Origin: Selaginella moellendorffii
Lineage: Eukaryota > Plantae > Lycopodiophyta
Direction: 5' to 3'
Assembly (NCBI RefSeq): GCF_000143415.4
Contig: NW_003314271.1
Location: 1,532,092 to 1,596,091 of the forward strand
DNA: 64,000 nt
Shown one piece after another: positions 19,465 to 61,213 of the stretch. A program made the translations under genes and the position numbers. The stretch's first letter is position 1. Every line of letters starts with the position of its first letter. The notes under the pieces were generated by a model, which was given only the letters and a program-made list of their open reading frames with translations, was not told the origin of the DNA and made no database searches.

Positions 19465-20330
19465 TCATTTGGTGTTGTAGTGTCTTCTCTTGGGATTCAC
19501 CTTGAATCTAAGCTCACTATACTACTTGATGAGCTCCTCCACACCCGCCACCTGAAAGTTTGAAGAGATCCACGCACGCATTCCCCGGCCAAGCAAAAAG
19601 CTTGTTGAAGCCAGCACATGCCACAATCATCTTTCCCACTTCCACATTCTCAACAAGTTCATCATACTTCTCCTGATCAAAAGGACCACACTTTTCATTG
19701 AAAACAACATCAGACGTGCTCAGGTTATTGTCCACCAGCAATTCATACTCGCAACACCTAAAACTGAAAAACACCTCCCACTCGTGCACCAGCACCCGCG
19801 CATCAAACACCAGCCGCACCTACATGTCCAGCAACCCAACACCACCAAACAGGTAGAAACCAGCTCTTGCCGAAACTTTCGCAATCCCAGGATCTCACGC
19901 CCTCAGATCTCACAGGGTATGCTGGGCTTGGCCCTGATGTACTTGATTAGAGGCGGACTAAGCAACGGCATCTCCTGCTGCTGCTGCTGCTGGAGCTCTT
20001 CCTGGACTGCCTCTATCGATATCGGCCTCCTCTTGTAGCTGTCGACACAAAGGCGAATGTTGGTGTACGTGAGGTCCTCGTCCCAAATACCTTCGTAGCA
20101 CAACTTGTCGTCGCTTAGGTACGACAGCCTCTCGTGGACAATGGTTCACTCACATTGGCCTGCTTGCAGGCATTGCTCCACACCCACTGGATCCTATGTT
20201 CTAACCTGCACAGAGGGAAGTCCGCAACGCTGTAGAAGCCCACATACTGCCAGTGCCTGTGACCCAGATTGTCCAGTACTAGACCCAAAATTGCAGACTC
20301 ATCCAACTTTCTCCTGAGCTGTGCCGCCAA
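19465..20330 (-). pseudogene. Gene X family copy 1 (ATG>TTG, deletions, frameshifts)
   Basis: Fragments 20115-20330, 19903-20103 and 19517-19819 align to the 302-aa X protein. Confidence 0.85.
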
Positions 20331-20655
20331 GTTTAGTTACAAAGATTAGTCGTTTTGATTAAGTATGGGTTCTCTTTTTCTTTTTTTCGTTGTTTTTTTT
20401 TCCTTAGTGTTATTTAAATTAAAGAGCCTTGGGTAAAAAGATTAATCTTACTAATTAACTTACAAAGCCCTAAGTAGAAAAGCTCAAACATTCTTAGAGA
20501 GCTTTTAATTTAGATTTTTTTTAATTATGTGTATATAGAAACGAAAAGGAAAGCTTTAGAATTTCCGCAAACCGACAAGTCACGCTCTTGGCCATTTCAA
20601 CGATTTAAATGTGTGGTTGTGAGACCGGAAGGCCCACCCACCTAGCACGGAAAGA

Positions 20656-21639
20656 ATGGGCGAGGAGGAGCGCAAGAGCTCCGGCAAGCAAATTGGAGGC
20701 TTTGTGTTTGCAGAGGATGGATCTTACGTGCGCGCTCCTCCACCAACAGGTCCTGCGGGGTTCTTTGCGGAGGTTCCAGCCAATCCCGCGTTCATTGACG
20801 GCGTGGCGAGCCGCGACGTGACTCTCGACAAGGATCGGGGACTTTGGGTGAGAGTTTTCCGTCCGGAAGAGCTGGGAAATCGCACGCTGCCCATCGTCAT
20901 CTTCTACCACGGGGGAGGATTCATCTACATGAGCGCCGCGAATGCGATCTTTCACAGATTTTGCGAGGCCCTGTCCAGGAAGCTGGGAGCGATCGTGGTG
21001 TCTGTGAATTACCGCCTAGCTCCGGAGCACAGGCTCCCGGCGGCCTACGACGATGGCTACGACGCCCTCAACTGGGTCCGAGAGATCGCCAAGAGCAGTA
21101 GCGATCAAGACGCTTTCGCTCACGCGGATTTCTCGAAGATCTTCGTCATGGGCGACAGCGCCGGGGGAAATCTCGCAGCCCGCGTGGCATTGCGCGCTGC
21201 CCAGGATGGAATCCCGCTCGCCGGCCAGATCCTCCTCCAGCCCTTCTATGGAGGCACGTCCAGGACCGAGTCGGAGCTCAAGCTCGGGTCCTCCAATCCG
21301 ATGATCACGCTCGACTCCAGCGATTTTTGCTGGCTGGCGACGCTCCCCGAGGGCGCGGCCGACCGCGATCATCCATTTTGCAACCCGATGGTGGAATTGC
21401 CGGGAGATCTCGAGAGATTGGGGGCCGGGGGACTGCCGAGAGCGCTGGTGGTGGTGGGCGGCAAGGATCTCCTCCACGATCGCCAGGTAGAGTTTGCAAA
21501 GATCTTGGAAGACGCTGGCAATGCCGTGAAGCTCATCGAGTATGAAAACGCTTCCCATGGATTCTACGCCGCGGGGGACGATAGCTGCCAGGAATACGTC
21601 CTTGTCTTGGACGAAATCGCTAGCTTCTTGCGAGAGTGA
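20656..21639 (+). CDS. Plant carboxylesterase (CXE / GID1-like HSL-family alpha/beta-hydrolase), 327 aa
   Basis: Intronless; [30 protein letters not shown] (Ser), GGKDLL (Asp), HGFY (His retained). Confidence 0.95.
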   Translation: [327 protein letters not shown]

Positions 21640-21905
21640 CCCCTGGCTGACGGCTGTGAACCCGCGTTGAATAAAGTGGACTCTGTTGACTTACGGGTTC
21701 ACTGGCGGTCAGAGCTCAGGGTACACAAGCTTTGGCAGCCATTCACGAGGATGGCATTTCTTCCTTTTGTCTTTGCGGTGTCATCAGGCAGCAATTTCTC
21801 ATTCCACTGCGCATTCCCTTCCAACCAGCAGTGCTTGATTGGATGCAAAAGAACAATGGTTGTAGTGATCGATGTTCATCAAAGTTTATGAATCCAAACA
21901 ACTTG

Positions 21906-58323: not shown

Positions 58324-58557
58324 ATCCGAGCTTTATAGTTACGGTATTAATTTAAATTATCGAGTTATAAATTAAATTAGTTTAGTTAAAAATTAATGTA
58401 TGTAGTATTAATTAAATTAAAGAGCCCTAAGACCTTTTAATTTGAATTTTTTTATACCAGCATAGAAACGAAAAGGAAAGCTTTAGAATTTCCGCCATTT
58501 CAACGATTTAAATGTGTGGTTATGAGACCGGAAGGCCACCCACCTAGCACCGAAAGA

Positions 58558-59529
58558 ATGGGCGACGAGGAGCGCAAGCAAATTGGAGGCTTTGTGTTTG
58601 TAGAGGATGGATCTTGCGTGCGCGCTCCTCCACCAACAGGCCCTGCGGGGTTCTTTGCGGAGGTTCCCGCCAATCCCGCGTTCATTGACGGCGTGGCGAG
58701 CCGCGACGTGATTCTCGACAAGGATCGGGGAATTTGAGTGAGAGTTTTCCGTCCGGAAGAGCTGGAGAATCGCACGCTGCCCATCGTGATCTTCTACCAC
58801 GGGGGAGGATTCATCTACGTGAGCGCCGCGAATGCGATCTTTCACAGTTTTGCGAGGCCCTGTCCAGGAAGCTGGAAGCGATCGTCATGTCTGTGAATTA
58901 CCGCCTAGCTCCGGAGCACAGGCTCCCGGCGGCCTACGACGATGGCTACGACGCCCTCAAATGGGTCCGAGGGATCGCCAAGAGCAGCAGCGATCAAGAC
59001 GATTTCGCTCACACGGATTTCTCCAAGATCTTCGTCATGGGCGACCGGGGGAAATCTCGCAGCCCGCGTGGCATTGCGCGCTGACCAGGATGGAATCCCA
59101 CTCACCGGCCAGATCCTCCTCCAGCCCTTTTATGGAGGCACGTCCAGGACCGACTCGGAGCTCAGGCTCGAGTCCTCCGAACCGATGCTCACGCTCGACA
59201 CCACCGAGTTTTGCTGGCTGGTGACGCTCCCCGAGGGCGCGGCCGACCGCGGCCATCCATTTTGCAACCCGACGCTGGAATTGCCGGGAGATCTCGCGAG
59301 ATTGGGGGCCAGGGGACTGCCGAGAGCGCTAGTGGTGGTGGGCGGCAAGGATCTCCTCCACGATCGCCAGGTAGAGTTTGCAAAGATCTTGAAAGACGCT
59401 GACAATGCCGTGAAGCTCATCAAGTATTCCCATGGATTTTACCTCGTGGGGGACGCTAGCTGCCAGGAATCCGTCCTTGTCTTGGACGAAATCGCTAGCT
59501 TTGTACCGCTGTTGACCATCGTTGAATAA
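58558..59529 (+). pseudogene. CXE pseudogene
   Basis: TGG>TGA at 58735-58737, frameshift near 58846, and a deletion removing the catalytic Ser of GDSAG near 59045. Confidence 0.9.
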
Positions 59530-59780
59530 TGTGGACTTGATTGACTGACGAGTTGACTGGCTGTCAGAGCTCACGGGATTGGATGTACACAAGGTTTGGC
59601 AGCCATTCACGAGGATGGCATTTCTTCCTTTTGTCTTTGCGGTGTCATCAGGCAGCCTTTTCTCATTCCACTGCGCATTCCCTTCCAACCTATAGTGCTT
59701 GATAGATGCTGGATTGGATCCAAAAGAACAATGGTTGTAGTGATCGATGTTCGTCAAAGTTTATGAATCCAAACAGATGA

Positions 59781-61213
59781 TTAGATGTTCTTGAGTGTGC
59801 ACAGCATACCCAAGGGGAAACTGGGCTCGAAGAAGCTCCCACTCAAGATTTGCCTCGTGATGATCCGGTTTGCTGCTTCGGTGTAGTGAACTCCATCCCA
59901 ATTGAGAAACGCAGATGGATTCTTACAAGTCGTTGACGCCACCGTCTTCCCAGCCATCACTTTGCTCTCCCCACATTGCACCGCAAAATTGTAATTGTAG
60001 TTCCCTCCAATCCCACAGCAGGCCTTGGTGGCAAACTGGAATCCTGTAAAGTCAACCATGGTCAGAGATTCGTTGACCGCTTATGTTCTTGTGGTGTTAC
60101 CATTGCTCGCAGCCTTGAGGGTAAGCGAATATTTGATGTCATAAGTGTTCGTGTAGATTATAGTGCTGCCTGGGAGCTGGCTACGGAGGCTGCTCAAAGC
60201 CTGCTTGAGCAAGCCATTGTAGTGCTGCGTGACTTGGTTGAATTCGATAGCGCACCCAGCTTGATCGTAGCTCACCCGGAGATTTGGGAAGTTTGTGAGG
60301 AAGTATGGGATGCAGCCCTGGGGCCCAACGTCCGAGACTAGGAATGTTCGTCCTCCCTCGGCATACACGCCCTGTGTAGATTCAATGCAAACACACAAAA
60401 GGTATCTTCAGCGAAATCTATATGTAAGAGTTTTTCCATGTCGTCGACCTTGACAAGCGCGATGATTCCATCCACTGCCCGGAAAATGTATGCTTTGAGC
60501 TGGTCGAAGTTCATGTTTCGGTTGTATCCATAGCTAAAGTCGTTCCCGCCAATGTCGACGATGTAGAGCGCTCGAGAGAAGGCATCCCTGGCGGGAAGAG
60601 CGTTGAGAGAGTTCCCTGGGAACATCATGATTGATCAAGAATGTATGAGCGGGAAATGTAGCTATCAATCTTGGAGAGAACGGAATGGAATAGATCCGGG
60701 GATTCATATCCTTGCCTGTTACAAGGACTTTTTGCTTGAACTCTCGAAACTGGTTGAGCTGGACGTTCAGCGAGAAAGGGCTGATGTAAGTCACGGCTTG
60801 GGACGTCGCTCCAGCCGTGGCGAAGTTGACGCCAGTGGTGAAGTTGGATCCCACCGCTTGGAAGAAGGAACTTAGATATGGAATTCCTAGAGCTTCAGCT
60901 ATTGCAGTGAAACAACAAAGAAGAACTCAGTGCAATTCAAGCTTGTATAGTGAAACACTTCACTTATGAAATCGATTCCAAGGCGGCCATCGCTGTATCT
61001 CAGGAATGGCCTCCCGGGAAACGTCATGCCATAGGGTGGGAACTCGGATTGGCTGAAAGTCGGGAATGCCGTCTGGATTCCTCCGGTATCGGAGGTGGAA
61101 TCTCCAAAGTTGAAAATGGCAGGAAACACACAGGCCGAAGATGCGCCCAAGAATCCCCCAAAGATTCCACTCCCCGCCGCCAGCAGCACGAGAAAACTCG
61201 CATGGAATTCCAT
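59781..61213 (-). CDS. GDSL esterase/lipase, 377 aa; exons 61213-60964, 60898-60716, 60615-60449, 60371-60101, 60043-59781
   Basis: Hydrophobic signal-peptide-like N-terminus; FNFGDSTSDTG, RYSDGRL, GVNFATAGA, DIGGNDF, WDGVHYTE. Exons sum to 1134 nt in frame using a GC-AG second intron. Confidence 0.92.

Follow-up and report, generated by a model that had tools for sequence, protein, structure and literature searches.

Organization of the locus

We analyzed a window of 64,000 nucleotides from Selaginella moellendorffii (contig NW_003314271.1, positions 1,532,092 to 1,596,091) that contains carboxylesterase (CXE) genes paired head to head with members of a second gene family, referred to here as X (Table 1). 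Using the intact copies X4 (50034-50936, minus strand) and C4 (51431-52417, plus strand) as tblastn queries, we mapped five divergent X/CXE pairs, the number and placement given in a preliminary description of the window, and the copies share 69-95% protein identity, well above chance. Both genes are intact in one of the five pairs, the pair at 50031-52417, which that description had also singled out. The double frameshift of C3 spans a conserved CXE segment, where the allele from the other haplotype shows a normal reading. Pair 2 had been described as split by an insertion; a 3.2-kb AT-rich stretch is indeed present, with two copies of a 76-nt repeat inside it (29120-29277), but the 5' half of the CXE and the intergenic region have also been lost. 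We also observed a sixth X copy, X0, in the window.

Table 1. Genes, gene fragments and insertions in the window (positions count from the first nucleotide of the window)
Feature	Positions	Strand	Remarks
X0	3194-4006	-	Older X paralogue without CXE partner; disrupted by stop codons
Ty3/gypsy-type LTR retrotransposon sequence, nested	4926-19404		Between X0 and X1
X1	19483-20330	-	Pair 1; pseudogene, frameshifted into four pieces
Pair-1 intergenic region	20331-20655		Between X1 and C1
C1	20656-21639	+	Pair 1; intact carboxylesterase, 327 aa
GDSL lipase 3'-exon fragment	21909-22275	-	Tail-to-tail with C1
GDSL lipase 3'-exon fragment	25918-26345	+	Tail-to-tail with C2
C2	26634-27158	-	Pair 2; C-terminal half of CXE (residues 155-328); 5' half gone
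AT-rich insertion/replacement	27160-30400		~31% GC, 3.2 kb, ORF-free; in place of C2 5' half and intergenic region
X2	30522-31430	+	Pair 2; intact X gene, 302 aa
GDSL lipase 3'-exon fragment	33082-33714	+	Tail-to-tail with C3
C3	33974-34936	-	Pair 3; open ORF with compensated double frameshift in conserved core
Ty3/gypsy LTR retrotransposon sequence	35141-47436		Inserted between C3 and X3
X3	47437-48249	+	Pair 3; scrambled: overlapping N-terminal part, inverted middle, C-terminal piece
X4	50031-50936	-	Pair 4; intact X gene, 301 aa; SELMODRAFT_409348 region
Pair-4 intergenic region	50937-51430		~200-bp insert with relic copy of X 5' end
C4	51431-52417	+	Pair 4; intact carboxylesterase, 328 aa; carries HGGG, GDSAG, Asp, His
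GDSL lipase 3'-exon fragment	52708-53312	-	Tail-to-tail with C4
X5	57525-58323	-	Pair 5; broken X copy
C5	58558-59510	+	Pair 5; broken CXE, 69% identical to C4 (translated alignment)
GDSL lipase gene	59784-61213	-	Sole full-length spliced copy in array; behind C5
Older divergent CXEs	61479-63998		Three genes or fragments, 36-47% identical to C4, without X partner

The sequence inserted between C3 and X3 contains 1.9-kb direct repeats (35915-37817 and 41884-43780) that are 96.9% identical, and its pol ORF (43842-47216, 1124 aa) encodes protease, RT, RNase H and integrase in Ty3/gypsy order; with its long terminal repeats and ordered pol domains, we classify it on sequence features as Ty3/gypsy. 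The nested Ty3/gypsy sequence between X0 and X1 is missing from the other haplotype. Behind each of C1 to C4 lies a 3'-exon fragment of a GDSL lipase gene, and behind C5, the remaining CXE copy of the five pairs, lies the full gene. The full gene is 97-100% identical, piece by piece, to a gene at locus L007 (6964-8396), and the 3' fragments in the other units derive from it.

Distribution, constraint and predicted structure of X

Searches for relatives of X returned 19 in a collection of 5.8 billion clustered proteins and 13 in one of 1.84 billion representatives, all of them SELMODRAFT hypothetical proteins of S. moellendorffii, a species restriction that depends on the lycophyte genomes included in these collections. 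In common with other taxonomically restricted (orphan) families, X has no domain found in Pfam, evolves fast, varies in copy number and is frequently pseudogenized. In contrast to a very recent de novo gene, X is older, with distant paralogues at 26-33% identity that retain the same motifs, and purifying selection on it is measurable. The preliminary description had named a dN/dS near 1 as a result that would count against its view of X; we found a dN/dS of 0.39-0.43 at a dS of 0.53-0.62 (Fisher p 2e-8 to 4e-7), and of ~0.4-0.5 even between young copies. Since the coding sequence is constrained to this degree and motifs persist in such distant paralogues, X is, by these sequence measures, a real protein-coding gene under moderate purifying constraint. 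On the other haplotype, the X0 allele (L001, 10001-10876) forms an uninterrupted ORF of 291 aa. Because X0 is thus broken on only one of the two haplotypes, and because most X copies are pseudogenes, X is apparently dispensable.

These properties bear on whether X could be the decaying ORF of an unrecognized repeat or mobile element that lies beside CXE by chance. Many X copies exist and most are broken, b-type copies occur in ~5-kb tandem repeats at two loci, homologues outside the species are absent from the protein collections searched, and RefSeq XP_ accessions were seen for the CXEs but for none of the X copies at this locus. However, the dN/dS is significantly below 1 over a dS of ~0.55, distant single-copy paralogues lie among ordinary genes (one such cluster has RefSeq XP_ models), the homology of old copies in the self-alignment is limited to the coding region, and neither terminal repeats nor a transposase or RT domain is associated with X. 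We therefore regard an origin of X in a mobile element as quite unlikely.

The preliminary description read the N-terminus of X as a possible F-box, a motif of 40-50 residues with a three-helix fold that docks on SKP1. Searching with the Pfam profiles F-box (PF00646), F-box-like (PF12937) and their relatives, including FBD, we obtained no match at E ≤ 1 in 12 X-family members and three distant paralogues, and no F-box match in the N-terminal 80 residues of X even at E ≤ 10. The sole N-terminal Pfam match was to HSR and was below threshold (17.8 bits, cut-off 24.9). The stretch WDESVILGQVFDNL, supposed to be the first F-box helix (LPxEIL-like), is missing from the distant paralogues, which lack the N-terminal 25-35 residues and begin at the FYGV position (residue ~33), and the supposed conserved F-box W (of RVW) is L in paralogue P0016. 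The profile search found no substrate-binding domain of the LRR, Kelch, WD40 or FBA type in X, and the remainder of the protein is helical. Indeed, the best AlphaFold model (pLDDT 65.8, pTM 0.70; the other four of five models were poor) is all-helical, with a low-confidence helix over residues 2-22 and a single long helix over residues 24-59, where an F-box would show three short helices. Foldseek returned no match to this model at E ≤ 0.001, the best VIA-align Z was 5.9 and came from generic helical bundles, and no F-box protein, including those of the SKP2, TIR1 or MAX2 type, was among the structural matches of this moderate-quality model. Judged by structure alone, a model of this quality could miss a cryptic F-box-like element. 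The F-box reading thus drew no support from profile search, paralogue comparison or structural matches, and X appears to show no sign of being an F-box protein; with no profile match, the helix motif missing in distant paralogues and no substrate domain, we largely reject this candidate. Overall, X is an undescribed, S. moellendorffii-restricted family of ~20 members, predicted to be all-helical, with no convincing match to solved folds.

The carboxylesterases and the proposed ligand-sensing module

The X reading had been part of a larger proposal, that a divergent F-box protein X forms a ligand-sensing or degradation module with the adjacent alpha/beta-hydrolase, on the model of GID1 with SLY1/GID2 and of D14/KAI2 with MAX2. 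Arguing for such a module are the five divergent X/CXE pairs, the constraint on X and its basic C-terminal PKRRR motif, and the fact that GID1 receptors are the best solved relatives of CXE. We found that the CXE copies match Abhydrolase_3 (PF07859) at 217.6 and 223.2 bits (cut-off 25; E 2e-64), that their closest PDB entries are GID1 and CXE15 (best match 3ebl at 6e-62), and that they align nearly full length with CXE15, CXE120 and AeCXE1 (E 1e-53 to 1e-55). The motifs HGGG, GDSAG, Asp and His line up with their CXE15 and GID1 counterparts. The earlier label of a GID1-family carboxylesterase is apt for family and nearest structures, but not for receptor type. GID1 receptors have lost the catalytic His and carry Val or Ile instead, and their N-terminal lid extension covers the pocket and binds DELLA. 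CXE reads ENASHGFY where rice GID1 reads ENATVGFY and Arabidopsis GID1 EKATVGFY, and it has HGGG instead of HGGS. Alignments of CXE, a GID1 homologue, with GID1 start at CXE residue 39 against GID1 residues 51-59. The 38 preceding residues are unaligned, and CXE has a shorter N-terminal region with no alignment to the GID1 lid. Since the catalytic His is retained, CXE is predicted to be an ordinary esterase of the catalytically competent type and not a GID1-type receptor. The array resembles tandemly arrayed plant CXE genes such as Arabidopsis CXE15, a strigolactone hydrolase, and Actinidia CXE1 in family (PF07859), motifs and local multi-copy arrangement, yet it differs from them in that most of its copies are pseudogenes and in that an orphan gene and lipase fragments lie between the copies.

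In the known systems the hydrolase works with an F-box partner, whereas the neighbor of CXE lacks an F-box; to our knowledge, those partners are not encoded as adjacent gene pairs. The preliminary description also held that X homologues never linked to CXE genes elsewhere would speak against the module, and this is what we found: X was without CXE linkage at all five other loci examined (L002 to L006). X lies beside hexokinase and topoisomerase II at L003, a P450 at L004 and NUP50 at L005; L002 has three X copies in tandem, and L006 has two full-length X matches and a short C-terminal fragment ~5 kb apart. Older CXEs were likewise found without X and older X copies without CXE. Taken with the evidence on the F-box and on substrate-binding repeats, the retained His and the separate neighborhoods leave the module largely refuted at the sequence level, and we consider it extremely improbable.

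Duplication history and interpretation

Self-alignment of the window indicates that X, CXE and the sequence downstream of CXE recur as one unit. Segmental duplication typically leaves unit boundaries that run through a further gene, and because the edge of this unit cuts arbitrarily through the GDSL lipase gene, our data point to this process. As in segmental duplications of multi-gene blocks elsewhere, the unit comprises two whole genes and a truncated third in direct and inverted copies; only an apparent swap of partners between pairs 1 and 2 stands out. The dS is 0.047 between X2 and X4 and 0.044 between C1 and C4, and nucleotide distances to pair 4 for X and CXE are 2.8/2.9% (X2, C1), 6.7/5.6% (X5, C5) and 10.6/13.1% (X1, C2). 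The X and CXE distances appear to agree once a single inversion is assumed between pairs 1 and 2, and gene conversion between intact copies would equally yield this pattern. The other haplotype has X and CXE arranged in this way too, and the copy number of the unit differs between the two haplotypes.

We asked whether X might instead be a functional partner of CXE without being an F-box protein (for example a co-expressed accessory, inhibitor or scaffold that shares a bidirectional promoter), with selection keeping the two together. Regulatory sequence is often shared by genes that start head to head within 0.25-0.5 kb of each other, and X and CXE start only ~240-495 bp apart; the arrangement on the other haplotype and the constraint between young X copies also fit a partnership. 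The CXE-proximal 200 bp of the intergenic regions hardly vary from pair to pair and contain a TTTAAAT box, whereas the X-proximal part shows no conservation between pairs. Against a partnership, the single fully intact pair is one of five in the window, the intact copies X2 and C1 face a truncated CXE and a dead X1, respectively, a useless lipase fragment is carried along in the unit, and older paralogues of the two genes occur apart. We judge a partnership maintained by selection unlikely. Some benefit of the arrangement may exist, as X is under purifying selection and the three intact young-type X copies (X2, X4 and the L007 allele) each lie beside CXE sequence. That young X copies were recruited as esterase partners, such as a co-expressed regulator or inhibitor under a bidirectional promoter, to give a lineage-specific two-component hydrolase system seems very unlikely.

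We consider it likely that the locus reflects ordinary, passive tandem amplification of a gene block, and that the pairing of X with CXE is a by-product of the duplication unit with no joint function. The preliminary description had offered passive co-duplication as its fallback, and the repeat-unit structure, the decay and the lipase fragments support it; its claim that X and CXE were duplicated together is upheld. We infer that an expanding tandem X family met a tandem carboxylesterase array at this locus, and that segmental duplication, in direct and inverted orientation, would have copied a ~3-kb block several times; the block carried X on one strand, CXE on the other and, from the GDSL lipase gene downstream, the final exons. 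Most copies would then have decayed through frameshifts, truncation, Ty3/gypsy insertions and the AT-rich insertion, and pairs 1 and 2, which are inverted relative to each other, apparently exchanged partners in a single recombination.

The significance of passive amplification at this locus lies mainly in annotation and extends little beyond it. The attractive idea of a receptor with an F-box protein is corrected here as unsupported, and the automatic RefSeq name of the allelic CXE copies, 'gibberellin receptor GID1', misleads, given that they keep the catalytic His. Two gene models are chimeric, SELMODRAFT_443107 (X and CXE) and SELMODRAFT_416226 (X and GDSL lipase). Furthermore, an orphan family of ~20 members is documented in a model lycophyte. 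It might be used to study how genes confined to one taxon expand, hitch-hike along and degenerate, including cases in which function is present on one haplotype and absent from the other.

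Organization of the X/CXE array

We searched the window by tblastn using intact copies of X, a gene encoding an orphan protein predicted to be helical (X4, 301 aa), and of CXE, a plant carboxylesterase gene (C4, 328 aa), as queries. The search confirmed the five X/CXE pairs of the preliminary description, all divergently arranged, and upheld its claim that both genes are intact in pair 4 only; pairs 1, 2, 3, and 5 each contain a broken, truncated, or scrambled copy. The retrotransposon reported to separate C3 from X3 is of the Ty3/gypsy type: its LTRs measure 1.9 kb, and it encodes protease, RT, RNase H, and integrase domains. 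Pair 2 was described as split by an insertion. We did find an AT-rich stretch of 3.2 kb (approximately 31% GC, without ORFs) between C2 and X2, but it stands in place of the 5' half of C2, which is itself gone and not merely parted. Two adjacent 76-nt repeats lie inside this stretch at 29120-29277, and a search for terminal (inverted) repeats around it found none. The C3 frame is open over 329 codons (33974-34936), although a compensated double frameshift replaces a conserved core segment that reads normally in the allele on the other haplotype (proteins P0023/P0024). The esterase array runs on to the end of the window through older, divergent genes or fragments, and three matching intact genes are present on the other haplotype (locus L007, 3700-6839).

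Features of the X/CXE array (X0-X5 and C1-C5 located by tblastn)
Feature	Position	Strand	State
X0	3194-4006	-	sixth X copy, no CXE partner
Nested Ty3/gypsy elements	4926-19404		approximately 14.5 kb
X1 (pair 1)	19483-20330	-	frameshifted
C1 (pair 1)	20656-21636	+	intact
GDSL lipase fragment	21909-22275		last exons (3')
GDSL lipase fragment	25918-26345		last exons (3')
C2 (pair 2)	26634-27158	-	C-terminal half only
AT-rich stretch	27160-30400		no ORFs
X2 (pair 2)	30522-31427	+	intact
GDSL lipase fragment	33082-33714		last exons (3')
C3 (pair 3)	33977-34936	-	open frame, compensated double frameshift
X3 (pair 3)	47446-48249		scrambled
X4 (pair 4)	50034-50936	-	intact
Pair 4 intergenic region	50937-51430		approximately 200-bp insert
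C4 (pair 4)	51431-52417	+	intact
GDSL lipase fragment	52708-53312		last exons (3')
X5 (pair 5)	57540-58317	-	broken
C5 (pair 5)	58558-59505	+	broken
GDSL lipase gene	59784-61213	-	complete, spliced
Three older CXE genes/fragments	61479-63998		no X; 36-47% identity to C4

The amplified unit and its history

A chimeric gene model from the other haplotype (P0003), in which X is fused to a GDSL lipase, prompted a search for lipase sequence. Since the GDSL gene is spliced, it was mapped piecewise using the open frames of L007:6964-8396 rather than with a joined model. We found that the complete lipase gene lies tail-to-tail with C5, while fragments of its last exons lie behind the four other CXE copies. 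Because only these 3' exons recur, the amplified block is made up of X and CXE together with the 3'-terminal part of the lipase gene. The boundary of the unit thus cuts through the GDSL gene, which points to segmental duplication and not to a selected module. Passive co-duplication, the fallback offered in the preliminary description, is the account that we favor. The most likely history, and one we consider probable, is that a block at the junction between two independently expanding local families was passively amplified and then decayed.

The intact copies of X are as far apart in dS (0.047) as the intact copies of CXE (0.044). We reject strict co-duplication of today's pairs, since the nucleotide distances of X and CXE to pair 4 are discordant between present neighbors in pair 1 (10.6% for X1 versus 2.9% for C1) and in pair 2 (2.8% for X2 versus 13.1% for C2). 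The distances agree if the partners are taken as X2 with C1 and X1 with C2; those of X5 and C5 are 6.7 and 5.6%. A partner swap through inversion, or gene conversion, fits these distances better than strict co-duplication. Pair 2 lies in inverted orientation to pair 1, and a single recombination event joining the two intergenic regions would invert the intervening segment and swap the partners. Homology between pairs 1 and 4 begins only at 20449, within the intergenic region, which accords with recombination there; gene conversion instead of inversion is an alternative explanation of the partner pattern.

The other haplotype contains arrays of the same kind with fewer X/CXE units (loci L001 and L007), so unit number differs between haplotypes. 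L001 is 96% identical to positions 1-4926 of the window and joins this segment directly to the X1/C1 region (compared at L001 9107-9111), indicating that the nested Ty3/gypsy elements between them are specific to the haplotype studied here. X0, an older paralogue, contains stop codons in the window, while its allele at L001 10001-10876 (SELMODRAFT_416232; 2.4% nucleotide distance) is an intact ORF of 291 aa, and X0 looks like a segregating pseudogene. Given that X0 is intact on one haplotype only and that the majority of copies are pseudogenes, X is dispensable.

Identity of X

All protein matches of X are SELMODRAFT models (i.e., hypothetical proteins of S. moellendorffii). Searched with a profile, a set of 1.84 billion representative proteins yielded 13 matches, and a second profile search, of a word-indexed collection of 5.8 billion, yielded 19, all from S. 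moellendorffii. X had been read as F-box-like, a reading unsupported in every test run (profiles, motif conservation, model, domains, and structural matches). Pfam yielded no F-box match for X or its relatives, and no family for X, its N-terminal 80 residues (E<=10), its C-terminal part, 12 aligned relatives, or three distant paralogues. HSR and RENR_N were the only recurrent signals in these scans, both sub-threshold noise; an HSR identity was rejected because the match falls under the cut-off and is missing from paralogues. The stretch WDESVILGQVFDNL, proposed to form the initial F-box helix, is missing from distant paralogues, and the proposed F-box tryptophan (RVW) is a leucine in protein P0016.

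Sequence searches of the PDB with profiles from a shallow X alignment (A1) and from A1 plus distant paralogues (A2) gave a best match of only E=0.15. AlphaFold produced an unusable model from A1 (pLDDT 34) and one usable model from A2 (pLDDT 65.8, pTM 0.70), with twelve helices and zero strands. The model predicts a single 36-residue helix where an F-box requires a helix-turn-helix, and X has no substrate-binding repeat domain. With this model, Foldseek found no match in the PDB at E<=0.001, and the top hits of an exhaustive VIA-align search (Z 5.9) were generic three-helix bundles, under the tool's own meaningful level for helical proteins; F-box proteins were absent from the structural matches. 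The ESM Atlas returned only unnamed clusters, with low recognition, and none for P0016. The model, of middling quality, thus suggests a helical fold without an identifiable relative.

We found that dN/dS is 0.39-0.43 between the young X type and the older X0 type (dS 0.53-0.62; Fisher p 2e-8 to 4e-7) and 0.44-0.49 among young copies. Furthermore, paralogues at 26-33% identity keep an FYGVxDFALxRLxxRI helix and the motifs WxExDLF, ARLxFDARM, YDELVxxLEAxK, and VDLFNFxVG. Constraint and shared motifs together indicate that X is a real gene. X could instead be an ORF carried by a repeat, and a b-type subfamily with a C-terminal basic extension does form approximately 5-kb tandem repeats at L002 (9859-20647) and L006 (9899-20346), its L002 copies being broken in the ORF listing of that locus; the constraint on X argues against such an origin, which we regard as unlikely.

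Esterase type and linkage to X

CXE matches Abhydrolase_3 (Pfam, 2e-64). Its earlier assignment to the GID1 family holds insofar as GID1 is its closest solved relative (6e-62), with the strigolactone hydrolase CXE15 also among the closest (1e-54), but does not extend to receptor type. CXE alignments show HGGG, GDSAG, an acidic residue, and, at a position occupied by Val in GID1, the His of ENASHGFY; the GID1 lid does not align to the CXE N-terminus. The retained residues mark CXE as catalytic-type, not receptor-type, and allelic copies bear the RefSeq name "gibberellin receptor GID1" only as an automatic label. An F-box/receptor module is very unlikely.

X/CXE linkage is absent at the loci of X paralogues elsewhere in the genome (L002-L006), which counts against the ligand-sensing or degradation module of the preliminary description. 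X relatives adjoin hexokinase and topoisomerase II at L003, a P450 at L004, and NUP50 at L005. L002 contains three tandem X copies; at L006 there are two matches of full length and, in addition, a short fragment of the C-terminal part. Spacing is approximately 5 kb at both loci, neither of which has a CXE within 10 kb. We also aligned six X/CXE intergenic regions. The 200 bp nearest the CXE start are almost invariant, with a TTTAAAT box approximately 50 bp upstream of the ATG, while the X-side half is unconserved with many indels. In pair 4 and its allele, the insert includes a reverse-strand relic of the X 5' end that spans approximately 12 codons from the start. This pattern would fit a conserved CXE promoter, and the six regions gave no positive indication that a bidirectional promoter is shared by the two genes and under selection. 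A functional partnership of X with CXE not involving an F-box is, in our judgment, rather unlikely.

Searches by locus tag and for Selaginella CXE arrays found no literature specific to these genes. Two JGI models on the other haplotype (L007 10001-13834 and 15682-19226) are chimeric: SELMODRAFT_416226 joins X to GDSL exons, and in SELMODRAFT_443107 (672 aa) an X gene is run together with an X fragment and one half of a CXE. It is because of the latter that a CXE RefSeq protein shares a 90% cluster with X.
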